DNA of 32,000 nucleotides from Wallemia ichthyophaga EXF-994 (GCF_000400465.1 NW_008806280.1:210001-242000); one strand, 5' to 3'. Shown: positions 3,065-16,059, counted from the stretch's first letter. The notes: generated by a model not told the origin, from the letters alone. Numbers and translations: made by a program.

Positions 3065-3165
3065 TTTATACCACTTGTATTCTAATCTGTTAAATTTTAT
3101 CTGGCACATGACATAGCCCTGTGCCTAAGGATGCGGTGCACCAAACATTTTATTAACCGACAGCG

Positions 3166-3682
3166 ATGAACTTACTCAAAACACTTAGTGTAATTGGATT
3201 GATCGTAGCAGCTAGCGCTGCTCCAGCCGGCTCAGTGAGTATTGCTCGATAAAATGCGGATTGGCCACTGACATGATACAACCCAGTCAGCACAGAATGA
3301 ACATGCAGCTACCGTAGATAAGGTTAGTGGGCACCTATCAAGTGAGGTAGAGCTAAGGCTTATAAAACAATCCTCGCAGAGAGACTTTGGAGACTTTATT
3401 CAAGGCGCTGAAGATACTGGCGAAGATATAAAGGATTTCTTCACCGGAGAAAAGCGTGATTGGATGGATAAAACTTCAGACTTTTTCGACAATATTGGAG
3501 ACGCCTTCACCGGCGATGACGATAAGCAAAAGCGCGATTGGGTTGAGGACGCTTCAAATTTCTTCGATAACATTGGAGACGCCTTCACCGGCGATGACGA
3601 CAAGCAAAAGCGCGATTGGATCGACGATATCGGACAATTCAGTGAGAACGTCAAGGATATGTTCGATGGTGATGATAAGTAG
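3166..3682 (+). CDS. Secreted Kex2-processed repeat protein (KEP-like peptide precursor), 135 aa, 3 exons
   Basis: Exons 3166-3234 (MNLLKTLSVIGLIVAASAAPAGS, signal-peptide-like), 3287-3322 and 3380-3682. Introns GTGAGT..CAG (3235-3286) and GTTAGT..CAG (3323-3379) keep the frame. Four KR sites each precede DF/DW-starting acidic units. Confidence 0.85.
3452..3619 (+). repeat. Coding tandem repeat, 78-bp (26-codon) period, inside the KEP-like gene
   Basis: AAGCG(T/C)GATTGG recurs at 3452, 3530 and 3608. The 48-nt block ATTGGAGACGCCTTCACCGGCGATGACGA(T/C)AAGCAAAAGCGCGATTGG at 3494-3541 and 3572-3619 differs at one base. Confidence 0.95.
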
Positions 3683-3798
3683 AACACAACGGCGGCTTAG
3701 CGGCTTGTAAATAAATTGCACTGTAAAATCATGGGATATGACAATGCTTGGATTTGTATAATTCTTCTGGTTGAACCATCTACACGGTGCTGAGATAG

Positions 3799-5736
3799 AT
3801 GGAAAATACTGTGACAAGCCATTTCAATGTCGATAAGGAGGAATATATTAGACTTGTACTACAATCACTCAAAGACCTTGATTTATCGTGAGCACAGAAT
3901 TCCTCCTATTCTGCTATCACTGACGACCTCATTAGCAGCAGCTTCAATTGCCTATCACAAGAATCCGGCGTGGAGTTGGAATCTGATACCGTCACTCAAT
4001 TACGCTCTTCTATTTTACAAGGCAATTGGTCCACTGCCGTTCATTTAATCGATAAACTCAATGTGGACCACTATGAAGCACTGAATTCAAAGATTATTCT
4101 TAATAAGCAGCATTATCTTGAATCTTTGGAATGCGGCGATGATAAATCCGCTATTAATATCCTCCGACATTCTTTGGTTCCACTAATTCAGTCTGATCCA
4201 TGTCAAGTTCAGTTATTGTCGAGGTTGGTTTGGCTGTTTGATTTGAGCGCCATTTAACTTAGATTCTCAGTTGGCTCATGTGTAGCTCACCCGCAGAATT
4301 ACGTCAAAGAGCCCATTGGGATGGTTCAAATATGACATCACGATCAAAGCTACTCGATAGCTTACAATCTTACATAAAACCTTCAATTATGCTACCACAA
4401 AGCAGACTTTTCAATCTACTCAACCAAGCAAAGCTTTATCAATCACGTAATAACCGTTATAGCAGCATACATGACGAAAATCTAAACTTCTCTCTCTTAA
4501 ATGATTACCATCAGGACAACTCAACGTTCCCAAATTTCAACTCTCTCACTGTCAAAGCACACTTTGATGAAATCTGGCATTGTTGCTTTAGTCACAACGG
4601 TAATTATCTTGCAACGTCATCTCGTGATAAATCTGTTGTCATTTGGGAGGTTGATGTTGTTCGGCAGATCTTCAGAAAGTCTTTGACTATCTTAAATCAT
4701 GACGAAGATATAAGTGCTATCTCTTGGTCTAATGATGATACTATACTCCTCACTGCTGCGGAGGAGACTATATACATTCATCATACTGTAACTGGCAATA
4801 GTATCAACAGCTATCAAGGCGCTCATGAGCATGATGAGACTATCTCAAGCCTATTGTGGGTAAACGATGACTCTAAATTCTACTCAACCGGGCTTGATCA
4901 GAAGGTTATTGAATGGAGTCACAACGGCGCAGTGCTGCACAAGTGGAATGACCTACCCATACGCATAATGGACGCTGCTCTTACACCAGATCAGACAAAG
5001 CTTGTAGTCGCTGGTCCTGACGGTCCTCAGCCGACTGTTGGACAAGATGGCACGTTAAGTTACAATGAGGAGATGCGTCATCTAATGGTGTATGACACTG
5101 AATCAAGAACTTGTTTGTGGTAAGAATGTCTTGGTCTTTTGCTTCATGTCTTGCTTACTTTGATATATTAGGCAAGTCGAGATGAAGAATGAAATATCGT
5201 CTCTCAAAGTATCTTCTGACTCCACCAAAGTAATTGTCAACTACGCGCCTGATGAGATACAAATATGGAGTCTGACAGACCAATGTCTGCTCAAGAAGCT
5301 CTTCGGCCACAAGCAATCTAAACATGTAATTAAGTCGTCTTTTGGAGGGTTGGACGAGGGCTTTGTTTTGAGCGGTAGCGAGGGTTAGAAAGCTGCATTT
5401 GAACTGTCTTTTACTGACTCTATTTCAGATGCTGCCATCTATGTATGGCATCTTCAATCAGGAGAACTCATGGAGATACTCAAAGGACACGAGAAAGGTT
5501 GCGTAAACTCAGTAGCGTGGTCACCGACAATGCCGTTGATATGTTCTGTCGGCGATGATCGCACAATACGTATGTGGTCAACAAGGACATCTTCCAGCAA
5601 GCATACAGAGCTCAACCTGCTAGAAAACGAAGGCGATGAGGGCTCCATGCATGGTATCGAAGGTGGCGTGGAAGTTGACGATGAGGAGGTAGACGAAGCT
5701 ATCGATGAGGTCGATTATCACATAGCTGATCAGTAG
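3799..5736 (+). CDS. GID7: LisH-CTLH-WD40 protein, WDR26/Gid7 subunit of the GID/CTLH E3 ligase, spliced
   Basis: ATG 3799 (MENTVTSHFNVDKEEYIRLVLQSLKDLDL, LisH-like). The intron ending at 3935 rejoins SSFNCLSQESGVELES. Then CTLH (LRSSILQGNW), LPQSRLFNLLNQA, and WD repeats (HFDEIWHCCFSHNGNYLATSSRDKSVVIW; GHEKGCVNSVAWSP). Confidence 0.9.
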
Positions 5737-5939
5737 CAACTATCATCAGTTTGATTATATCCATAAATTACTTATATGCATTTGGTTTGTTGATAAATTA
5801 GATGGCCTTGTGTTCGTTACTCGTAACTTTGAGAATAAAGTCTGCTTTCAATAGTTACCCTTACTCAGTCATAAAAGTACCAAAAATTCAAAGCGATGAT
5901 AAAACTCTGTCAAAGCATTGTTAAATTTCTGAGAGCTTG

Positions 5940-8390
5940 AATATTACTTAACAGCTGTATCCCTTGGATCCTTAAATACTGGATCTGAGACTCATCTCTG
6001 TATATGATAGGGTGATTTGAATGTTAATTTAATACTATCTAAAGCGTTTTGAAGAAATCTATTGAGCTAAATACGCTCAAGGCACCTTGCAAATGACCAA
6101 GTAAGTGAGAAGTCGAATGCAAATAGGATTACTATGAACGATGTCACGCGCTTCATATATAAATAAACAAATATGTCTAGCTGATGAAGACAAGTAGCAC
6201 CCAATCAGCTCAGAATTTCGGCTGTATAAACGTGATTTACGTTCTCCGACAATTAGCGTCCACAGGATTTCATGCTGGCTCCAAGGAGACTTTATTTTTA
6301 TGACCAGTAGTGCATTTCGAAATTTCAAACAATAGGGTTTGACAGGTATTATAGACTGGATTGGAATCTTAGATGTTATGATTTTAGGAACAAATATTTT
6401 TAGATCTTAAATCACACTCACTGCATTATGTCAAATTTAGCTGGACGAGTGTAGAGCAAATTACTTAAGTTATTCATGATAAGGGCATTTGAATTCTTCT
6501 CACACAGGTACTCTGCACATAATGATATCTAAATCTCCCCACTTTGTACTACCGATGATGCTGTAAAAAATACGTCATTGAGCATGGTATTTTCGACTGT
6601 GAGAGGGGAAGCATGGTAAAAAATAATCCTGAGTGTATTAGAGCTACATTTAAGCTATCTAAGAATCTAATAGCACTCTTCAGCCTTCAAACGACGGTAT
6701 GTCCACGAAAGGAAGACGTGATATTGACGCGCTTAACTATAAGTTCAGCGTTGTAATTTGAAGGCGTACTTTTCTTTCGCTTATCAGTCACCAAAAATGC
6801 TGTCAATAATTCCAAACTCCACCTGTTCTTCCCTCCCTAACTGCCTCAATACCCGTATCTGCTGGTACCACTCCTCAGTAGTCATCGCAACTCAATAAGC
6901 TGAAACAATAATTCCTCAATAATACACTAGGAAAGCTCGCTGTCTTGTTGTATGCAAGATACGCTAGGAATTCAAGTTGCGTGATCCTCTTGTTTAGGCA
7001 GCGCAAGAATATACGTCGTCCAAATTTCAGAGACTAATGATGTCAACTCATCAAACGATACCAAGAGAACATACGATATATATCTTATTCTCTTTCCTTC
7101 TGTCAAAGTGTCATATCGCTGACTTTTCTCGTCAACGCTTTCGGTTGTGTGGTCGGATAGTCACTGGTCGCCGGACATTCATTCTGAATCGATAGTGAGT
7201 CATCGTCGGAAAACTTCATGTTCACTTTATTCCATCTGCTCATTCGCTGTACAAACCGTTCCTCAACCCAGCAGTCGAAAACTTAAAAGAATTGCAGTCT
7301 TGTTAATTACGAGATGCCACGAGCCACGCTAATTTTTAACTGTATCTTAACATCATAACTAATATAATTATAATATCTGACATTGCTTAAGTCACTAGTC
7401 TGAATCTGTTAGGTGACAAACCCAATATTAATCCCAAGCCCTTTTTATCGTCACGCTCTCTCTTCGCCGTCTCGTAAACGTCTTTTACCTTCTCCTCGTA
7501 GCCTTATCGGATAAACCTCCAGGACAGATTTCAAGCAGAACACTTTAAAGGTCACGCTATTTTTATATTACATTCTAATTAATTATTATAATGGATGTTA
7601 AATTTACTGTACAAGTCATTTCTCAAGTACAACTCTGAACCTTAACAGTGCCTTAACAAACTTTGTGATGGAATTAAATTGCTAAGATGAGTTATCGATG
7701 TGAAACAAAAACTTTTATAGAAAAGGGGTAATGGTTGCAATGGCCGGAGTCGTCAAAATCCACGTCATGGCTGTATCTTAATTAACAGAATTACCGAACC
7801 CTGCACGCTTCGAAAAAGAAGAATAAAATTGCTTAAAACGATATGCATTATCAAAATACAAAGATAATTATGCAAATATCAGAATGTAATTGGATCCGCT
7901 AGTCCAAATAATTGCGTAAGGTTAAGACAAATTGAACACAGTCCCAAAAAGGTATCCATTTGTCATTGAGTTTTCTAAGATATCTCTGATTAATACGCAC
8001 TCACTATTTATAATAGCAATTTGGTCACGATTCATAAAAACACTGGCACTGAGGAAAGGATAAGATTGAGGAGAAAAGAAAAGTGAACCAAACAGACAGC
8101 CGTTCAGCCATTTGTATGTTAAAAGTCCAGAAATCATGACATAATATTCTAAATCGCAATATCCTTGAAAAACGATAATGTACATGCTCTAGCTACGATG
8201 AAGAGTAAATAGACGTAAAAAGTAAGCCTGATAATTATTTCTGGGCATTTCCATTGCTGGAAAGCAGGTAACGTCTATGTGTTTATCGAAATCGCATTTA
8301 ACCTCCATTTGACATATGAAATGTTCACATTGATTTGATTCAAAATCATAGAGATCCGTGGGTCTGACAATTTATTCGGTTCACTTGAAT
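5940..8390. repeat. Left arm of long inverted repeat (~2.45 kb)
   Basis: Line-by-line comparison shows position x pairs with 18479-x over the whole arm with no indels. Mismatches seen at 5946, 5955, 7277, 7298, 7317 and 8388. The ORF-track pairs 6077/12402, 7147/11332 and 7922/10557 all sum to 18479. Confidence 0.98.
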
Positions 8391-10088
8391 GCTCAATTTT
8401 TATGTTTAAAGCTTCCATTATAATTCAACTTGTGCACTTCAAAAATTGCTTAAATATTCAGTCGAATTGTGGAACAAGCCATGAATGAATAAATTTTACA
8501 CATTAATTCCCAAAAAGGTTGTGAAATTCGATGAGTGACAGATAATTCTGGACATCTGTTTATCGAGAAAAACTGGATCAATCAATTTAAAAATTAAATC
8601 ACCACCCAGTTGAATTAACCGTTACAATATAGAGACATGGCGATCAGTCTTGAGTGATATACAAAGCCTAAATTAGCTTTGAAGAAGTCATATATTTAGA
8701 CAATTTTTGAAGTCAATTTCCAAGACTGCAAAGTTGAAGATTTGTTGATCTAGTACAAAATAGATGTTCTGCAAGAAGCTTCTTTTTCTTGTCAAAGATC
8801 ATTCTAACTGTATGAGCGTGATTAATAATTATGCTTATTGTCAATCTTAGTTAGTACTTTAAACCCGGAAAATTGTCAGTTTGAAGTGACCGTATCTTGA
8901 TTAGATCCGTGTCAGAAGCTCGATTTCGACAAAATAACTTCGAAATCTAACTTGCGCCAAATCATGATAAAAAAAACACATCAATCAATGGCAGATAAAT
9001 TTTTTTAGTCCATATAGATTTCCCTACACATTATATATCACTATAAAACAAAATAGCGCTAGCTTTATTAACCTAAAGTTTTCGATGGCTTATTATATAT
9101 ATTATACAACGATTTACTCTTACAAGTGTCAGTTTTGTGAAGTTTTTTTAAAGTTAGATCAATACTCGTTAGAATAATATTTTAATCGAACATGTTTTAG
9201 TTAGCTTAAGCGTAAGGAGAAGTAACTTCAAGAATAGACACATCAGTAAATGATGACAGCCGATAAAATGAACGAAGCTTGAAAAACTTCAACGTGATAC
9301 TGTTTCATAAGATGGAGAGAATGTGCCGATTAATACCCTATTGGTTTTTCTAACATTTTTTATTGTTACGTTTTTGATCTAATTAATAATATATATCTTT
9401 TAATGGTCGGGTGCAAAATAATCTCTTAAATGAAAGGTCTCCACCTCTATCAATTCATGGCTTCGTCTCAAATTCCATGTTTTATTATCTATGAATATTT
9501 TTCGGAATAAATGCAGTCATTGTTACCTGCATTCTTTAATCTAAATCAATTATTCAGGAAGTTGGAACATCTGTAGTTCTAACATCCGTAAATAAACCCA
9601 TAGTCGTGGCTAGTTTGTGGATGGCATAAAATCTTCGACTAATCCGAAGTACTTAAAAAGCGAAATTGGAAAAAATTTAACATTCACACACAATTTGCTA
9701 AAATGCTAATCATTTTGTCAAATATACTCATTTTGTCCATCCGTTTTATGCAATTATTTGAAGCATGTCCATGTTAAAAATAGTGAGCTGTTGATCGTAA
9801 GTCGATGTTTGGTTATAATCTAGGATGACCTTTTTATAAAACGATGAATGGGCTACAACAAAATAGTATTCTTTTTTAGTTCACAAGTACTACATTGACT
9901 TTCGTAAACATTAGCCTTTGACTTTTTATAACAATTTTTAGCTTCATGATCTTCATAGTGCGCTTTTATTTTCAAATAACATTGTGTTGACATGAACTTG
10001 AGTTAATAATTTCCCCGTGACTCAATCCCTCAGATCTCTTGTTGTGAGATTACACTGTTTCGCTGAGTTTAAAACACATAACATTTTA
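8391..10088. other. Unique AT-rich non-coding spacer (central core) between the inverted arms, 1698 bp
   Basis: No ORF in the track in any frame. Hand count over 8401-10080 gives 523 G+C in 1680 nt (~31% GC). Many short A/T runs. Not self-complementary. Confidence 0.92.
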
Positions 10089-12539
10089 ATCCAAGTGAAC
10101 CGAATAAATTGTCAGACCCACGGATCTCTATGATTTTGAATCAAATCAATGTGAACATTTCATATGTCAAATGGAGGTTAAATGCGATTTCGATAAACAC
10201 ATAGACGTTACCTGCTTTCCAGCAATGGAAATGCCCAGAAATAATTATCAGGCTTACTTTTTACGTCTATTTACTCTTCATCGTAGCTAGAGCATGTACA
10301 TTATCGTTTTTCAAGGATATTGCGATTTAGAATATTATGTCATGATTTCTGGACTTTTAACATACAAATGGCTGAACGGCTGTCTGTTTGGTTCACTTTT
10401 CTTTTCTCCTCAATCTTATCCTTTCCTCAGTGCCAGTGTTTTTATGAATCGTGACCAAATTGCTATTATAAATAGTGAGTGCGTATTAATCAGAGATATC
10501 TTAGAAAACTCAATGACAAATGGATACCTTTTTGGGACTGTGTTCAATTTGTCTTAACCTTACGCAATTATTTGGACTAGCGGATCCAATTACATTCTGA
10601 TATTTGCATAATTATCTTTGTATTTTGATAATGCATATCGTTTTAAGCAATTTTATTCTTCTTTTTCGAAGCGTGCAGGGTTCGGTAATTCTGTTAATTA
10701 AGATACAGCCATGACGTGGATTTTGACGACTCCGGCCATTGCAACCATTACCCCTTTTCTATAAAAGTTTTTGTTTCACATCGATAACTCATCTTAGCAA
10801 TTTAATTCCATCACAAAGTTTGTTAAGGCACTGTTAAGGTTCAGAGTTGTACTTGAGAAATGACTTGTACAGTAAATTTAACATCCATTATAATAATTAA
10901 TTAGAATGTAATATAAAAATAGCGTGACCTTTAAAGTGTTCTGCTTGAAATCTGTCCTGGAGGTTTATCCGATAAGGCTACGAGGAGAAGGTAAAAGACG
11001 TTTACGAGACGGCGAAGAGAGAGCGTGACGATAAAAAGGGCTTGGGATTAATATTGGGTTTGTCACCTAACAGATTCAGACTAGTGACTTAAGCAATGTC
11101 AGATATTATAATTATATTAGTTATGATGTTAAGATACAGTTAAAAATTAGCGTGGCTCGTGACATCTCGTAATTAACAAGTCTGCAATTCTTTTAAGTTT
11201 TAGACTGCTGGGTTGAGGAACGGTTTGTACAGCGAATGAGCAGATGGAATAAAGTGAACATGAAGTTTTCCGACGATGACTCACTATCGATTCAGAATGA
11301 ATGTCCGGCGACCAGTGACTATCCGACCACACAACCGAAAGCGTTGACGAGAAAAGTCAGCGATATGACACTTTGACAGAAGGAAAGAGAATAAGATATA
11401 TATCGTATGTTCTCTTGGTATCGTTTGATGAGTTGACATCATTAGTCTCTGAAATTTGGACGACGTATATTCTTGCGCTGCCTAAACAAGAGGATCACGC
11501 AACTTGAATTCCTAGCGTATCTTGCATACAACAAGACAGCGAGCTTTCCTAGTGTATTATTGAGGAATTATTGTTTCAGCTTATTGAGTTGCGATGACTA
11601 CTGAGGAGTGGTACCAGCAGATACGGGTATTGAGGCAGTTAGGGAGGGAAGAACAGGTGGAGTTTGGAATTATTGACAGCATTTTTGGTGACTGATAAGC
11701 GAAAGAAAAGTACGCCTTCAAATTACAACGCTGAACTTATAGTTAAGCGCGTCAATATCACGTCTTCCTTTCGTGGACATACCGTCGTTTGAAGGCTGAA
11801 GAGTGCTATTAGATTCTTAGATAGCTTAAATGTAGCTCTAATACACTCAGGATTATTTTTTACCATGCTTCCCCTCTCACAGTCGAAAATACCATGCTCA
11901 ATGACGTATTTTTTACAGCATCATCGGTAGTACAAAGTGGGGAGATTTAGATATCATTATGTGCAGAGTACCTGTGTGAGAAGAATTCAAATGCCCTTAT
12001 CATGAATAACTTAAGTAATTTGCTCTACACTCGTCCAGCTAAATTTGACATAATGCAGTGAGTGTGATTTAAGATCTAAAAATATTTGTTCCTAAAATCA
12101 TAACATCTAAGATTCCAATCCAGTCTATAATACCTGTCAAACCCTATTGTTTGAAATTTCGAAATGCACTACTGGTCATAAAAATAAAGTCTCCTTGGAG
12201 CCAGCATGAAATCCTGTGGACGCTAATTGTCGGAGAACGTAAATCACGTTTATACAGCCGAAATTCTGAGCTGATTGGGTGCTACTTGTCTTCATCAGCT
12301 AGACATATTTGTTTATTTATATATGAAGCGCGTGACATCGTTCATAGTAATCCTATTTGCATTCGACTTCTCACTTACTTGGTCATTTGCAAGGTGCCTT
12401 GAGCGTATTTAGCTCAATAGATTTCTTCAAAACGCTTTAGATAGTATTAAATTAACATTCAAATCACCCTATCATATACAGAGATGAGTCTCAGATCCAG
12501 TATTTAAGGATCCAAGGGATACAACTGTTAAGCAATATT
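10089..12539. repeat. Right arm of long inverted repeat (~2.45 kb)
   Basis: Reverse complement of 5940-8390, with mismatches at 12533, 12524, 11202, 11181, 11162 and 10091. Confidence 0.98.
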
Positions 12540-12713
12540 GAAACCCTTAGAAGTAATCAATTCGTGCATTTTTCTTCTGTATGCATTACTTGCATTAGTG
12601 AATGTGTGACTCAACCAGGAACGAGAAAGCGAAGGAATGATATATATTACATCAATCCGGTATATACCATTAAGAGACTACATCTATTATAATGTGCAAA
12701 GTATAAAATACAG

Positions 12714-15537
12714 TTAACTTTCAATCAGACCGAGTCTCTCCTTCGATCTCTTGCTAGCGCGATATAGCTCATGAAGAGCTTTCCTAACTCCATTAAAGTC
12801 ACAAGCCTCTATACAGCTGTTGTAAACATTTAGTAAACGCTAGTAGCCTATAAAAATCTAACTCACGACGTATACTTGTCAATGAAAAAGCTCTGATCCG
12901 CCATACCCACATTGACCAGCTTGGATTGCTGAATAATAGCAGGTATGACGTTTTTCATCAGCGCAGCATCGAACTCTGAAAGCTGTCTTAGGAGAGTGAT
13001 AACCGTACTGGTGCAGTCTTCCGGGAAGGTGTTGAGTAAACCTTGTAATAGTACTTTTGTTAAATTGGCGATATTAGTATGATTCGAGAGGGTGTTCTTG
13101 ATTGTATTTTTGTCCACTTCAACGTTGTCACCACTAGTTAAGTATCCAACTAATGATCTTATGAAATCCAATGAGATCAAGATTGTGTCAACACTAAACA
13201 ACGTTAATGCAGTGAGGGATAATTCGAAAATAGGCTGAATCACGCTTCCATTGATAACGAGTGCAGGTCTGAGATCAATGATCTGTAGTAATAAATGCAA
13301 ATAATCTTCAACTAAGTCAGGTATTTTGGTTGCATCAGTTGATTGTAAAATTGAGAATAATTTATTAGATATTTTGTTGAACGATTGACTTATAAGCTGT
13401 TTATCGTTAGCAGCATAGTTAAAAGCCTTGGTCAGCAACCAAATATACACTGATAGAGGATTTAAGTCGAATGAATTGGTCAGTAATTCAATTAACTTTG
13501 GTATAACTGTAACGACAGCCTGCTCATCGAAGAATCTTAATCCCTTTCTAAACAATCCACAGACTCTTTCGATCAAAGTCGCTGATGACCTATTATGATG
13601 GACAATAATACTTGCGAATACGTCATACAACTCATAAAAAGTCACCTGGCATTGGATTGGTAAGGGTGCGATTGGACCTGTGAAGGCAATGTAGCATTCA
13701 ATTTGCTCTATATTGATAATCAAGATCTTGATATCATCATGAGATAAAGTGCTCTTCGTGATAACCCCCTTGACATTATTCAAGTATGGTTGAGTGAACT
13801 TCTGTATGAGAGCCAACTGATCGTTCTTATCGCTGATGGACTCAATGACCAAAGAGATGGATTCGGAGATAGATCTGTGATCATCTTCTTGTAAACCAGA
13901 CTGAATTAGTTGATTGTTGAACTCCAATAGTTGAGGTAAATAAGGTATCAATTGCTTGTTGCAGTCTTCGCATAAGAACTTTAAAGCTTGCGAAGAAGCA
14001 GCAGGGATGTCAACATCCTTACAACTGAGATCGAAACCTGTTGTGATAAACGACATATAGAATGGAATGTGGTCAGGCTTTAAATTGATCCACTCAGTAA
14101 ACCTAGAAGCAACCAATATACCTGCATACTTGATTCTAGGATGTTGAGGAAGGTTTGGCAGCAAATTGAAGATGTTCTCTAAAATTTCATTGTCGCTCTG
14201 GTAATCGACTTTGGAGCCCATAGACCTAATTGAAAAGAGAGGCGCTTCAACTGATTGCCATTCATTTGAATTAATTGCAGTAAGAATCAAGGAATACGAC
14301 CTAGACAAGCAGTAGCTTGATCCTATCACAGTGCAACAATCTTTTAAGGTGTCACCAATGTAATGCCTAAATGATCTGAAGTCATCATACTCTTGAGCAG
14401 TGATAGTGGATTCATCGAGAGGAAATTTTAAATGATTGATGAAAATGTCAAGCAAAGACGAGTAGATTGGTACGAAATGCGGCTTTAAATCACTCTTTAT
14501 GTCCAGAGAATGAGCCAGCTTGTACCAGAAGTTGAAGGTGATCTGGGCTATGTCTAAATCGTGATAGGATGATGATGAAATAATGGCTTGAATGACATGG
14601 CTGAATGACGAAGGTGATGATAACATGAGCGGCAAGTAAGTTTCACCGACTTGGCAGTACAGTCTGGTGAAAAGTCTAACAGCGTCGTTATCTTCTTGGT
14701 CAATGTTGAGTGGCTTTGATAACTCTAATAAGATGACAGTGATTAGCTCGTTATTATCTTGTAGCTCTTGAGACTCATTGATAAGGACTATAAGAGTTTC
14801 AATACCAGACTCGACCAAACTTTCGTCTTGAAGTGAGTTTAAAAGGGAGGACAAAATGTTGGAATTAAGCAAAGAAGATGGAAAAATTTCGCCAGAGACT
14901 AGCCAAGATTTCAAGCAATTAAAGACTAAAGCATTGTCTGTGTTGCTATTGGCAATATACGAGTCCAAAAGCTGTAAGACTTTATTGGAGTTGTTGGTAA
15001 GGAGAGTGGATGAACGGTGAGAGAGCTGGTCGTAAGAAAGCTGAATTCTTTGATTATTGACTTCTTCAGGTAAAATGGTCAAAAAGTCAAGTAGAATGTC
15101 ATTATTTGCCGAGTAGAAGGACTCAACGTAATCAGTCACGGGATCTGACCAATCAAAGTACTGAATGGCCAAATCAGCTAACGATAAATTCAAATAAGTC
15201 TTCAAAACGCGTGGATGATTAGATTTAACTAAAGAGGAAAGCAAAGTGTCTTTAAGTGAGGATAGTGATTGATATGGCAACTGGTCGAAATCGTAGATAA
15301 TTTTTGATCTAAACGTCTGCACTGCGAATAGTTTTAATTCCAAAGGTAAATTATCCTCGACTAAGAGGTCGTTGGATATTTGCCATGCATCTTGCTACGC
15401 GAGTGGTTAGAAACGCAGGCCAAGCACGTGTAACTCACAGTCTGTTGAAACGATTGCAGATATTCATTGGCTAGTGATTTTTTGCTGTTATCTGCATCAT
15501 AGTATAAAATATTCAACGCCTCTATAACTTGAGCCAT
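12714..15537 (-). CDS. MTR10: Transportin-SR / Mtr10 importin-beta family nuclear import receptor, spliced
   Basis: ATG 15537 (MAQVIEALNILYYDADNSKKSLANEYLQSFQQT), intron, then QDAWQISNDLL..ELKLFAVQTFRSKIIYD, DFLTILPEE, TFNFWYKL, FRSFRHYIGDTLKDCC, WQSVEAPLFSIRSMG. Final intron 12817-12866 leads to a last exon ending in TAA at 12714. Confidence 0.93.
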
Positions 15538-15558
15538 CACAAACGAGAAACAAGAATA
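15538..15558. promoter_or_regulatory. 21-bp gap between divergent MTR10 and COA1 start codons
   Basis: The CAT of MTR10 ends at 15537 and the ATG of COA1 begins at 15559. Promoter elements cannot fit here and must overlap the coding regions. Confidence 0.6.
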
Positions 15559-16059
15559 ATGTCAAATATCAAGTTAGACGATATTCAATTTAAAAGATTT
15601 AACAAGCCATTGCCACCGAGATCTTCTCCTTTTAAATCTTTATCCTTACTTCTTGGCCTTTCTCTTTCATCGTGGGCCGTCTTCCTCACTTATTCAAACA
15701 ACGCCGAGAGGCTTTCTTCTTCCGTGGTGAAAGAGCTCATTAGGCAGAGCAAATTTCATCCTCTCACCAGAGATGTACTCGGTGCACCGATAAGACCCGC
15801 TTCAGATAACTGGTTTCTGTTGGGTGGTCTCTTAGGATCAACTTGGGTTAACGGCTCAGTTTCAATGATGCAAGGCAAGGTAGATATTAGTTTGAGGCTT
15901 AAAGGGTCTTTAGATTCAGGTACCGTGTACTTTACTTCAATTAGGAACTCAAATAAAGACAAGTTCAACATTCTGAGATACAAGTTGATCGACGATAACG
16001 GTACTCATCATAATCTATTGAATCAATCATCGATACAAGACTTTGAAAGCATTGAATAG
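15559..16059 (+). CDS. COA1: Cytochrome c oxidase assembly factor Coa1-like mitochondrial inner-membrane protein
   Basis: First in-frame ATG is 15559 (the track starts at a TTG at 15529). One hydrophobic segment followed by NAERLSSSVV..LG..I..W..GSVSMMQGKVDISLRLKGSLDSGTVYFTSIR, the fungal Coa1 pattern. Confidence 0.75.
   Translation: MSNIKLDDIQFKRFNKPLPPRSSPFKSLSLLLGLSLSSWAVFLTYSNNAERLSSSVVKELIRQSKFHPLTRDVLGAPIRPASDNWFLLGGLLGSTWVNGSVSMMQGKVDISLRLKGSLDSGTVYFTSIRNSNKDKFNILRYKLIDDNGTHHNLLNQSSIQDFESIE

Follow-up and report, generated by a model that had tools for sequence, protein, structure and literature searches.

We find that a 32,000-nt stretch of the Wallemia ichthyophaga EXF-994 genome, here called the window, carries a three-exon gene whose predicted product begins with a signal-like stretch and a short pro-region, followed by four homologous units with Lys-Arg (KR) pairs at their borders. 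We are highly confident that the gene is real, codes for protein and is confined to Wallemia. By its layout the precursor would be a Kex2-processed repeat protein (KEP), one that is an orphan in sequence, restricted to its lineage, and matches no known KEP type. The best explanation of the locus as a whole is a Wallemia-restricted KEP-type pre-pro-protein that would yield acidic helical peptides with a role at the cell surface, and we give this complete reading somewhat better than an even chance.

The three exons (3166-3234, 3287-3322 and 3380-3682, all on the + strand, as are the other features of the gene) join in frame to a 408-nt coding sequence specifying 135 aa, and a TAA stands in frame 12 nt 5' of the ATG at 3166. 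Exon 1 (3166-3234) comprises 23 codons, MNLLKTLSVIGLIVAASAAPAGS, and encodes the signal-peptide-like N-terminus. Intron 1 (3235-3286) is 52 nt long, in phase 0, with a GTGAGT donor, a branch-like CACTGAC and a CAG acceptor. Exon 2 (3287-3322; 36 nt, SAQNEHAATVDK) encodes the pro-region and supplies with its final codon the lysine of the first KR, and intron 2 (3323-3379; 57 nt, phase 0) has a GTTAGT donor, a branch-like GCTAAG and a CAG acceptor. Exon 3 (3380-3682) opens with the arginine and runs through the four repeat units to a TAG. A candidate polyadenylation signal, AATAAA, is predicted from sequence alone at 3710-3715 (+), 28 nt 3' of the stop. The two-intron splicing of the precursor mRNA is inferred from these consensus signals and from their conservation. 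Genes of W. ichthyophaga have a mean of 2.41 introns with a mean length of 61 bp (PMC3849046), and two annotated introns of the ubiquitin-hydrolase (UBP) gene in the window measure about 50 nt, use the donors GTACGT and GTGGGT and have branch sites of the CTAAC type; as their sizes and signals agree with both the species mean and these UBP introns, the two modelled introns are typical of the species. The initial annotation had proposed a spliced precursor of signal, pro-region and KR-separated repeats, with its first KR divided by intron 2, and joining the exons reproduces that 135-aa protein exactly, with the first KR interrupted as AAG|gttagt...cag|AGA. It had also held that the precursor would not be visible in the ORF track, and the list of ORFs at the locus indeed contains nothing but a 28-aa fragment of exon 1 and a 72-aa fragment that lacks the signal and begins inside unit 2, so that the gene is hidden at the level of ORFs.

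The evidence for translation comes from a comparison with a second species. A word-indexed search of 5.8 billion protein clusters returned P0001 as the sole similar protein, a prokaryote-style gene call from the Logan assembly SRR25399871 that runs from exon 1 directly into intron 1. The contig that carries this call led to a syntenic orthologue (L001) in another Wallemia species, flanked by the same mitochondrial-carrier (Mito_carr) and WD40 genes, with neighbouring proteins 82-90% identical to those in the window. The conservation evidence is therefore one pairwise comparison between the window and the single relative found. In exon 1, 20 of 23 residues are identical, and the nucleotide changes by codon position are 2/3/14 (14 of 19 at third positions). 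Exon 3 has a nucleotide identity of 80.6%, with changes distributed as 11/5/27 (27 of 43 at third positions). For the two exons together pS is 0.61 and pN 0.12, which indicates purifying selection, and among the six frames of exon 3 the modelled one alone combines a low pN/pS (0.24) with the absence of stops. Because this purifying selection is frame-specific on both exons, it argues that the gene is real and that the signal exon is tied to the repeat exon; at the level of codon substitutions, the comparison shows that exons 1 and 3 are translated in the modelled frames in both species.

Between these two exons the conservation is of a different kind. The donor of intron 1, the branch block GCCACTGA and the acceptor are kept at the same positions in L001. 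Exon 2 is weakly conserved (NARTANIDT in L001) and is followed by the same GTTAGT donor; the pro-region it encodes is fast-evolving. The counterpart of intron 2 in L001 lies in the same place and is 52 nt long, with a GTTAGT donor and a CTAAC branch. The pro-region of L001 (L001 1106-1342) differs in build: it has either a single, unusually long intron of 158 nt or an additional exon of 57 nt, SSDKLLASIRRTSKEFENV, which contains RR and after which a further intron of 50 nt with the donor GTGGGT would come. Directly 3' of the conserved first acceptor L001 reads SSDK, which resembles the ...VDK of the window. Every plausible splice variant in both species holds exons 1 and 3 in one frame, and the frame is also kept if exon 2 is skipped. 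Outside the gene, two short blocks are perfect or near-perfect matches to L001 within intergenic DNA that has otherwise diverged. One of them, AAATCATGGGATATGA, lies at about 3726-3741, between the stop of the KEP gene and the start of the WD40 gene, and the other, TTATACCAC(A)TTGTATTCTAATCTGTTA, at 3068-3098, after the Mito_carr stop and 5' of the KEP ATG. They may represent regulatory or 3'-end signals.

The number of repeat units is four in the window and three in L001, and peptide 2 of the window is the unit without a counterpart. The three internal KR sites of the window are conserved, in the context K-Q-K-R|D-W, as are the hydrophobic positions of the units, and the L001 protein has two KR sites, plus the RR if the extra exon is used. 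At the first site the residue preceding the arginine of peptide 1 is K in the window and T in L001 (T|R), so the lysine is specific to W. ichthyophaga and the release of peptide 1 is less secure than that of peptides 2-4. The charges of the corresponding peptides are -7, -7 and -6 in the window (3383-3679) against -6, -5 and -5 in L001 (1346-1564), and five positions are acidic in the window and neutral or basic in L001, with one position showing the reverse. As a single comparison, this is only suggestive of peptides that are more acidic in W. ichthyophaga than in its relative.

The N-terminus of the protein has a lysine at position 5, a 13-residue hydrophobic core (L7-A19) and small residues at A16-S17-A18/A19 (-3/-1 = ASA|A), with an 11-residue Kyte-Doolittle maximum of 2.47 at residues 9-19. 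This is the classical n/h/c arrangement of a predicted secretion signal. No transmembrane segment is found beyond it, the 19-residue Kyte-Doolittle maximum after residue 25 being -0.37. The four units that follow can be aligned with peptide 1 shifted by three residues and share a core of D-W/F...[DN]-[IV]-x-D-x-F-x-G-[DE]. Peptide 1 (3383-3451, DFGDFIQGAEDTGEDIKDFFTGE, 23 aa, charge -7) is followed by KR at 3452-3457, peptide 2 (3458-3529, DWMDKTSDFFDNIGDAFTGDDDKQ, 24 aa, charge -6) by KR at 3530-3535, and peptide 3 (3536-3607, DWVEDASNFFDNIGDAFTGDDDKQ, 24 aa, charge -7) by KR at 3608-3613; peptide 4 (3614-3679, DWIDDIGQFSENVKDMFDGDDK, 22 aa, charge -6) is the C-terminal unit. Units 2 and 3 form a 78-bp tandem duplication (3474-3619, +; 1.9 copies with 91% matches in Tandem Repeats Finder), and their coding stretches are 84.6% identical in nucleotides with a pS of 0.41, so the duplication is not recent.

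The mature region contains neither Cys, Pro, Tyr nor an N-glycosylation sequon, and consists of 32% Asp plus Glu and 15% Phe plus Trp. All seven peptides of the two species have a net charge between -5 and -7, and the estimates made at the outset for peptides 2 and 3 agree with the computed -6 and -7. In all seven the 18-residue Eisenberg hydrophobic moment is 0.53-0.57 with its peak at 100-105 degrees, compared with 0.26+-0.09 for shuffled controls, of which 0.02-0.4% reach the observed value; the amphipathic-helix register described in the initial annotation, with peptide 1 offset by three, is thereby borne out. The predicted periodicity is helical and not beta, and one to three glycines per peptide count against a helix. 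AlphaFold2, run without an alignment, places one helix in each unit and gives no confident tertiary fold (pLDDT 45), a model weakly consistent with a string of independent helices. A reading of the Asp-rich tails as EF-hand-like was ruled out by inspection and by Pfam.

To place the protein among known classes, we compared it with the operational definition of KEPs, which asks for a SignalP-positive secretion signal and no further segment that spans the membrane; cleavage at KR/RR should leave four fragments or more, and three or more similar repeats between dibasic sites should make up a minimum of 15% of the length (Le Marquer et al. 2019, PMC6339444). Cleavage of the window protein in silico at its four KR sites gives five fragments, and its four alignable units account for about 70% of its 135 aa, in agreement with the fragment and repeat numbers of this definition. 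KEPs number thousands of diverse members, mostly lineage-specific. Their route runs through signal peptidase, Kex2 cleavage after a dibasic pair in the late Golgi, and trimming by Kex1 (PMC9769878). The taxa reported to lack KEX2 are the Microsporidia and a few others, and Wallemia is not one of them (PMC6339444). The same survey counts six KEPs in the annotated W. ichthyophaga (Walic1) proteome; relative to the size of the secretome, the two Wallemia species are among its top producers of KEPs, as are other osmo- and xerotolerant fungi (PMC6339444). The likeness to known KR-repeat precursors that had been recognized in the initial annotation thus amounts to agreement with the sequence criteria of a class already described; the Kex2-processed layout is not new, and Wallemia had been noted earlier as KEP-rich. 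The KEP surveys were based on annotated proteins (PMC6339444; Umemura 2020, PMC7329392), and the repeat motif of the window gene is absent from the accessible portions of the supplements of both. For these reasons, and because no similar database protein exists, the gene was most likely missed by the surveys.

Searches for homologues beyond the orthologue support the view that the family is an unrecognised one. The spliced protein has no fungal match besides the P0001 call among the 5.8 billion clusters, and the spliced product is absent from that collection, which includes assemblies of public sequencing runs. In an exhaustive phmmer search of 1.84 billion representatives the sole match is a bacterial Sel1-like-repeat protein (E 3.5e-6, 10 stretches), which we judged spurious: every repeat has to be gapped by 5 residues in the alignment, the identity is 24-30%, and the score comes from repetition alone. 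Pfam gives sub-threshold noise alone (for example Tape_meas_lam_C, whose 18.5 bits fall short of the cut-off of 23) and no Sel1 or TPR match to the spliced protein, for Sel1 even at E 10; PDB gives nothing beyond eIF4A at E 0.3-1, and Rfam no match anywhere in the window. The MF_alpha domain is not found in the spliced protein at E up to 10, and the peptides begin with DW or DF. No homology to the Rep1 or Hum3 repeats was seen among the 5.8 billion clusters and 1.84 billion representatives. A scan of JGI metagenomes found no alignment to exon 3, and nothing nearer than 39% to the neighbouring Mito_carr exon. What had been set down as a family not recognised accordingly has no characterised match in clusters, representatives, Pfam, PDB or metagenomes, and the earlier interpretation as a whole is partly supported.

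The genomic neighbourhood is one of housekeeping genes. It was surveyed by a Pfam scan of ten window ORFs of at least 120 aa, covering 3 kb upstream and 28 kb downstream; the remaining ORFs of that size are the UBP hydrolase, dynein and an aminotransferase fragment. The other ORFs of the window encode ribonucleotide reductase, a mitochondrial carrier, a WD40 protein, an importin, Coa1, an aminotransferase, UBP, coatomer epsilon, succinyl-CoA ligase, Ipi1 and dynein. None of the window ORFs is a DUF3328/UstYa, tyrosinase, methyltransferase or other tailoring gene, as had been stated of the region before. Between 5.7 and 12.9 kb there is no ORF of at least 120 aa, and this gap is a non-coding AT-rich palindrome. 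It contains an inverted repeat (5927-8413 and 10066-12552; 2,487 nt, 99% complementary, with a 1,652-nt spacer) that is AT-rich (GC 32-37%) and holds no ORF of at least 120 aa, and that is probably a repeated or foldback element. At the corresponding position L001 has a GH31 alpha-glucosidase and an MFS transporter, of which there is no trace in the window. The W. ichthyophaga short-read contig SPOD01000004.1 is 99.75% identical to the window over 18.5 kb and ends 139 nt inside the right arm, an indication that the inverted repeat breaks assemblies.

The state of the public annotation bears on how the gene could have escaped notice. The 827-aa UBP ORF of the window matches an NCBI W. ichthyophaga protein at 100% identity, and that of W. 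mellicola at 73%. In the public W. ichthyophaga annotation (L084 13550-18226, corresponding to about 12.7-17.4 kb of the window) a 1301-aa model merges Aminotran_5 with the importin (IBN_N/Xpo1), which in W. mellicola are two separate genes, and Coa1 (window 15529-16059, opposite strand, Pfam E 2.6e-22) lies uncalled inside the fused model. The annotation is imperfect here, since this fused model swallows Coa1. Neither the 72-aa ORF nor the 281-aa WD40 ORF has a database record. A search with the WD40 exon (281 aa, window 4278-5123) at an over-strict cut-off of E<=1e-40 returned the L001 protein alone, and the annotated W. ichthyophaga and W. mellicola proteins were absent, though the collection does contain other window proteins; annotated proteins for the WD40 part of the genome may be missing from it. 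That the KEP gene is unannotated in the public genome is probable and short of proven, because W. ichthyophaga's own WD40 protein is also missing from the search. In W. mellicola, the locus reached through UBP (L002 18139-23279) has no KEP, WD40 or Mito_carr gene within 10 kb; synteny stops after the importin, and a 3-kb gap is followed by a 302-aa gene without a Pfam match.

If the protein follows the KEP route, its signal peptide would direct it into the ER, Kex2 in the late Golgi would cut after each KR in the K-Q-K-R|D-W context, Kex1 would remove the C-terminal K and R, and three or four unmodified linear peptides of 22-24 residues would be exported. We regard it as quite probable that the product is a secreted pre-pro-protein. 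Its cleavage at the KR sites into free peptides, suggested by the placement of the sites, their conservation and the precedent of the class, appears reasonably likely. The least secure step is the last, in which the peptides would work extracellularly at the wall or at interfaces in a repellent-like or hydrophobin-like manner, and taken on its own we put forward this physical action tentatively. The assignment of surface activity is an analogy, since knocking out KEPs in Coprinopsis produced no phenotype and most KEP peptides are without a known function. W. ichthyophaga is described as an obligate halophile (about 1.7-5.1 M NaCl), and its hydrophobins are unusually acidic, which their authors see as an adaptation of brine-exposed wall proteins (PMC3849046). 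The acidity of the peptides might likewise be a halo-adaptation, keeping them soluble at 1.7-5 M NaCl, where salt would screen the charge repulsion and the hydrophobic faces would drive helix formation or assembly. A more specific form of this idea, in which the peptides are halophile-specific, salt-gated anionic amphipathic peptides, unfolded and inert at low ionic strength, that fold, assemble or insert at molar NaCl or through Mg2+/Ca2+ bridging, we consider unlikely. If it were true, it would describe a surface-active, wall-organising or antimicrobial system that operates where cationic peptides fail, and the extra unit and the acidic excess (5 vs 1) of W. ichthyophaga would be adaptive.

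Several other explanations have to be weighed against processing into surface peptides. The protein could be secreted and remain uncleaved, as an acidic helical-repeat protein of about 12 kDa in which KR is a mere part of the repeat, for example a cation-binding, wall-associated or degenerate Sel1/TPR-like protein. The bacterial Sel1-like match, the recurring RDW-E-A...N-G...D pattern and the string of helices given by AlphaFold2 would fit such a protein, as would the T-R ahead of unit 1 in L001. On the other hand, that match is the gapped, repetition-driven one described above, with Pfam Sel1 unmatched even at E 10, a helix-turn-helix repeat (34-44 residues) would need more than the 26 residues of a unit, and the model contains no confident fold. 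The dibasic sites fall exactly at the unit boundaries in a conserved K-x-K-R|D context, and the variation in unit number, 4 vs 3, is like that of a peptide precursor; taken together, we find an uncleaved protein rather improbable. The gene model itself could be wrong or the locus non-functional, with exon 1 unjoined to exon 3 or the gene unexpressed, and the absence of the gene from the protein collections searched is what one would then expect. Against this stand the frame-specific purifying selection on exons 1 and 3 across species, the retention of the intron signals, the fact that all plausible splice variants are in frame, and a public annotation that is demonstrably faulty at the locus (the fused model over Coa1), so that we hold a wrong or dead model to be very unlikely.

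Kex2 processing could also serve a different end, with the products acting as diffusible receptor-binding signals (autocrine, quorum or developmental) and not as surface material. Pheromone-like KEP peptides are typically 9-24 aa long, a class into which these products fall by size; D1, W/F2, D15, F17 and G19 are tightly conserved, and several near-identical copies per transcript follow the logic of alpha-factor. Yet the units diverge considerably, with 32-36% identity to unit 1, and the charge of -6 to -7, combined with a marked hydrophobic face, looks more physical than ligand-like; the precursor lacks STE13 XA/XP dipeptides and does not match MF_alpha, and basidiomycetes use lipopeptide a-type pheromones (PMC9769878). 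We accordingly think a signalling role unlikely as well. The layout of signal and KR repeats is further shared with the precursors of ustiloxin and phomopsin, and the gene might encode a dikaritin-type RiPP precursor whose tailoring enzymes lie elsewhere in the genome. This we consider extremely improbable, given that the window ORFs include no DUF3328/UstYa, tyrosinase or methyltransferase gene, that the gap at 5.7-12.9 kb is a non-coding palindrome, and that the cores are 22-24 aa long without Tyr or Cys and not short and Tyr-rich.

The gene has consequences of several kinds. For surveys, the lesson is that proteome-based KEP searches miss small multi-intron precursors even in a compact, repeatedly sequenced genome. 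For the fungus, a sequence-orphan peptide family is added to a species noted for many KEPs and acidic wall proteins, and the family is appealing because its acidity is extreme and its host the most halophilic of known fungi. Should the peptides be made, they would provide cysteine-free, synthesisable 22-24-mers for studying amphipathic adaptation to saturated brine, and possible salt-tolerant surfactants.

Among known systems, the window precursor shares with KEPs in general the signal, the short pro-region, the tandem KR-bounded units over most of the protein and the lack of any other domain, and differs in that its peptides are unusually acidic (-6 to -7). Ascomycete alpha-factor precursors have the same signal, pro-region, KR-separated copies, acidic P1' residue and Kex2/Kex1 route. 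The units of the window precursor are divergent and not identical, and because it lacks both the STE13 XA/XP spacers and the MF_alpha domain, it is not an alpha-factor-type precursor. The precursors of dikaritin RiPPs (ustiloxin, phomopsin, asperipin, victorin) have the same KEP-type layout, but with short Tyr-rich cores in place of the 22-24-aa cores without Tyr and Cys seen here; the long cores, the lack of Tyr and Cys and the absence of a DUF3328 neighbour argue that the gene is not a dikaritin-type precursor.

Closer in the kind of peptide is Ece1 of Candida albicans, likewise a KR-delimited polyprotein that releases a linear amphipathic helical peptide, candidalysin, which acts on membranes. 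Its sequence is dissimilar, the window peptides are strongly negative, and the Wallemia host is a non-pathogenic brine fungus. Dermcidin, a mammalian host-defence peptide unrelated in sequence and origin, is also anionic and amphipathic and works in high salt. The acidic hydrophobins of Wallemia are likewise secreted, amphipathic and acidic proteins of a high-salt environment, but they are eight-cysteine folds of about 100 aa (PMC3849046); for both dermcidin and the hydrophobins the relation to the window peptides is one of resemblance only. Rep1 of Ustilago maydis, also from a basidiomycete, is a KEP that is cleaved during secretion into many amphipathic peptides (PMC3133707), which form amphipathic (amyloid) fibrils and act physically at the hyphal surface (PMC3133707). 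It gives rise to 11 peptides of about 37 aa, compared with three or four of 22-24 aa from the window gene, and the sequences are dissimilar; where the Rep1 peptides form amyloid fibrils, those of the window have a helical and not a beta periodicity and carry far more negative charge. With these differences, Rep1 is the favoured functional analogy for the putative window peptides.
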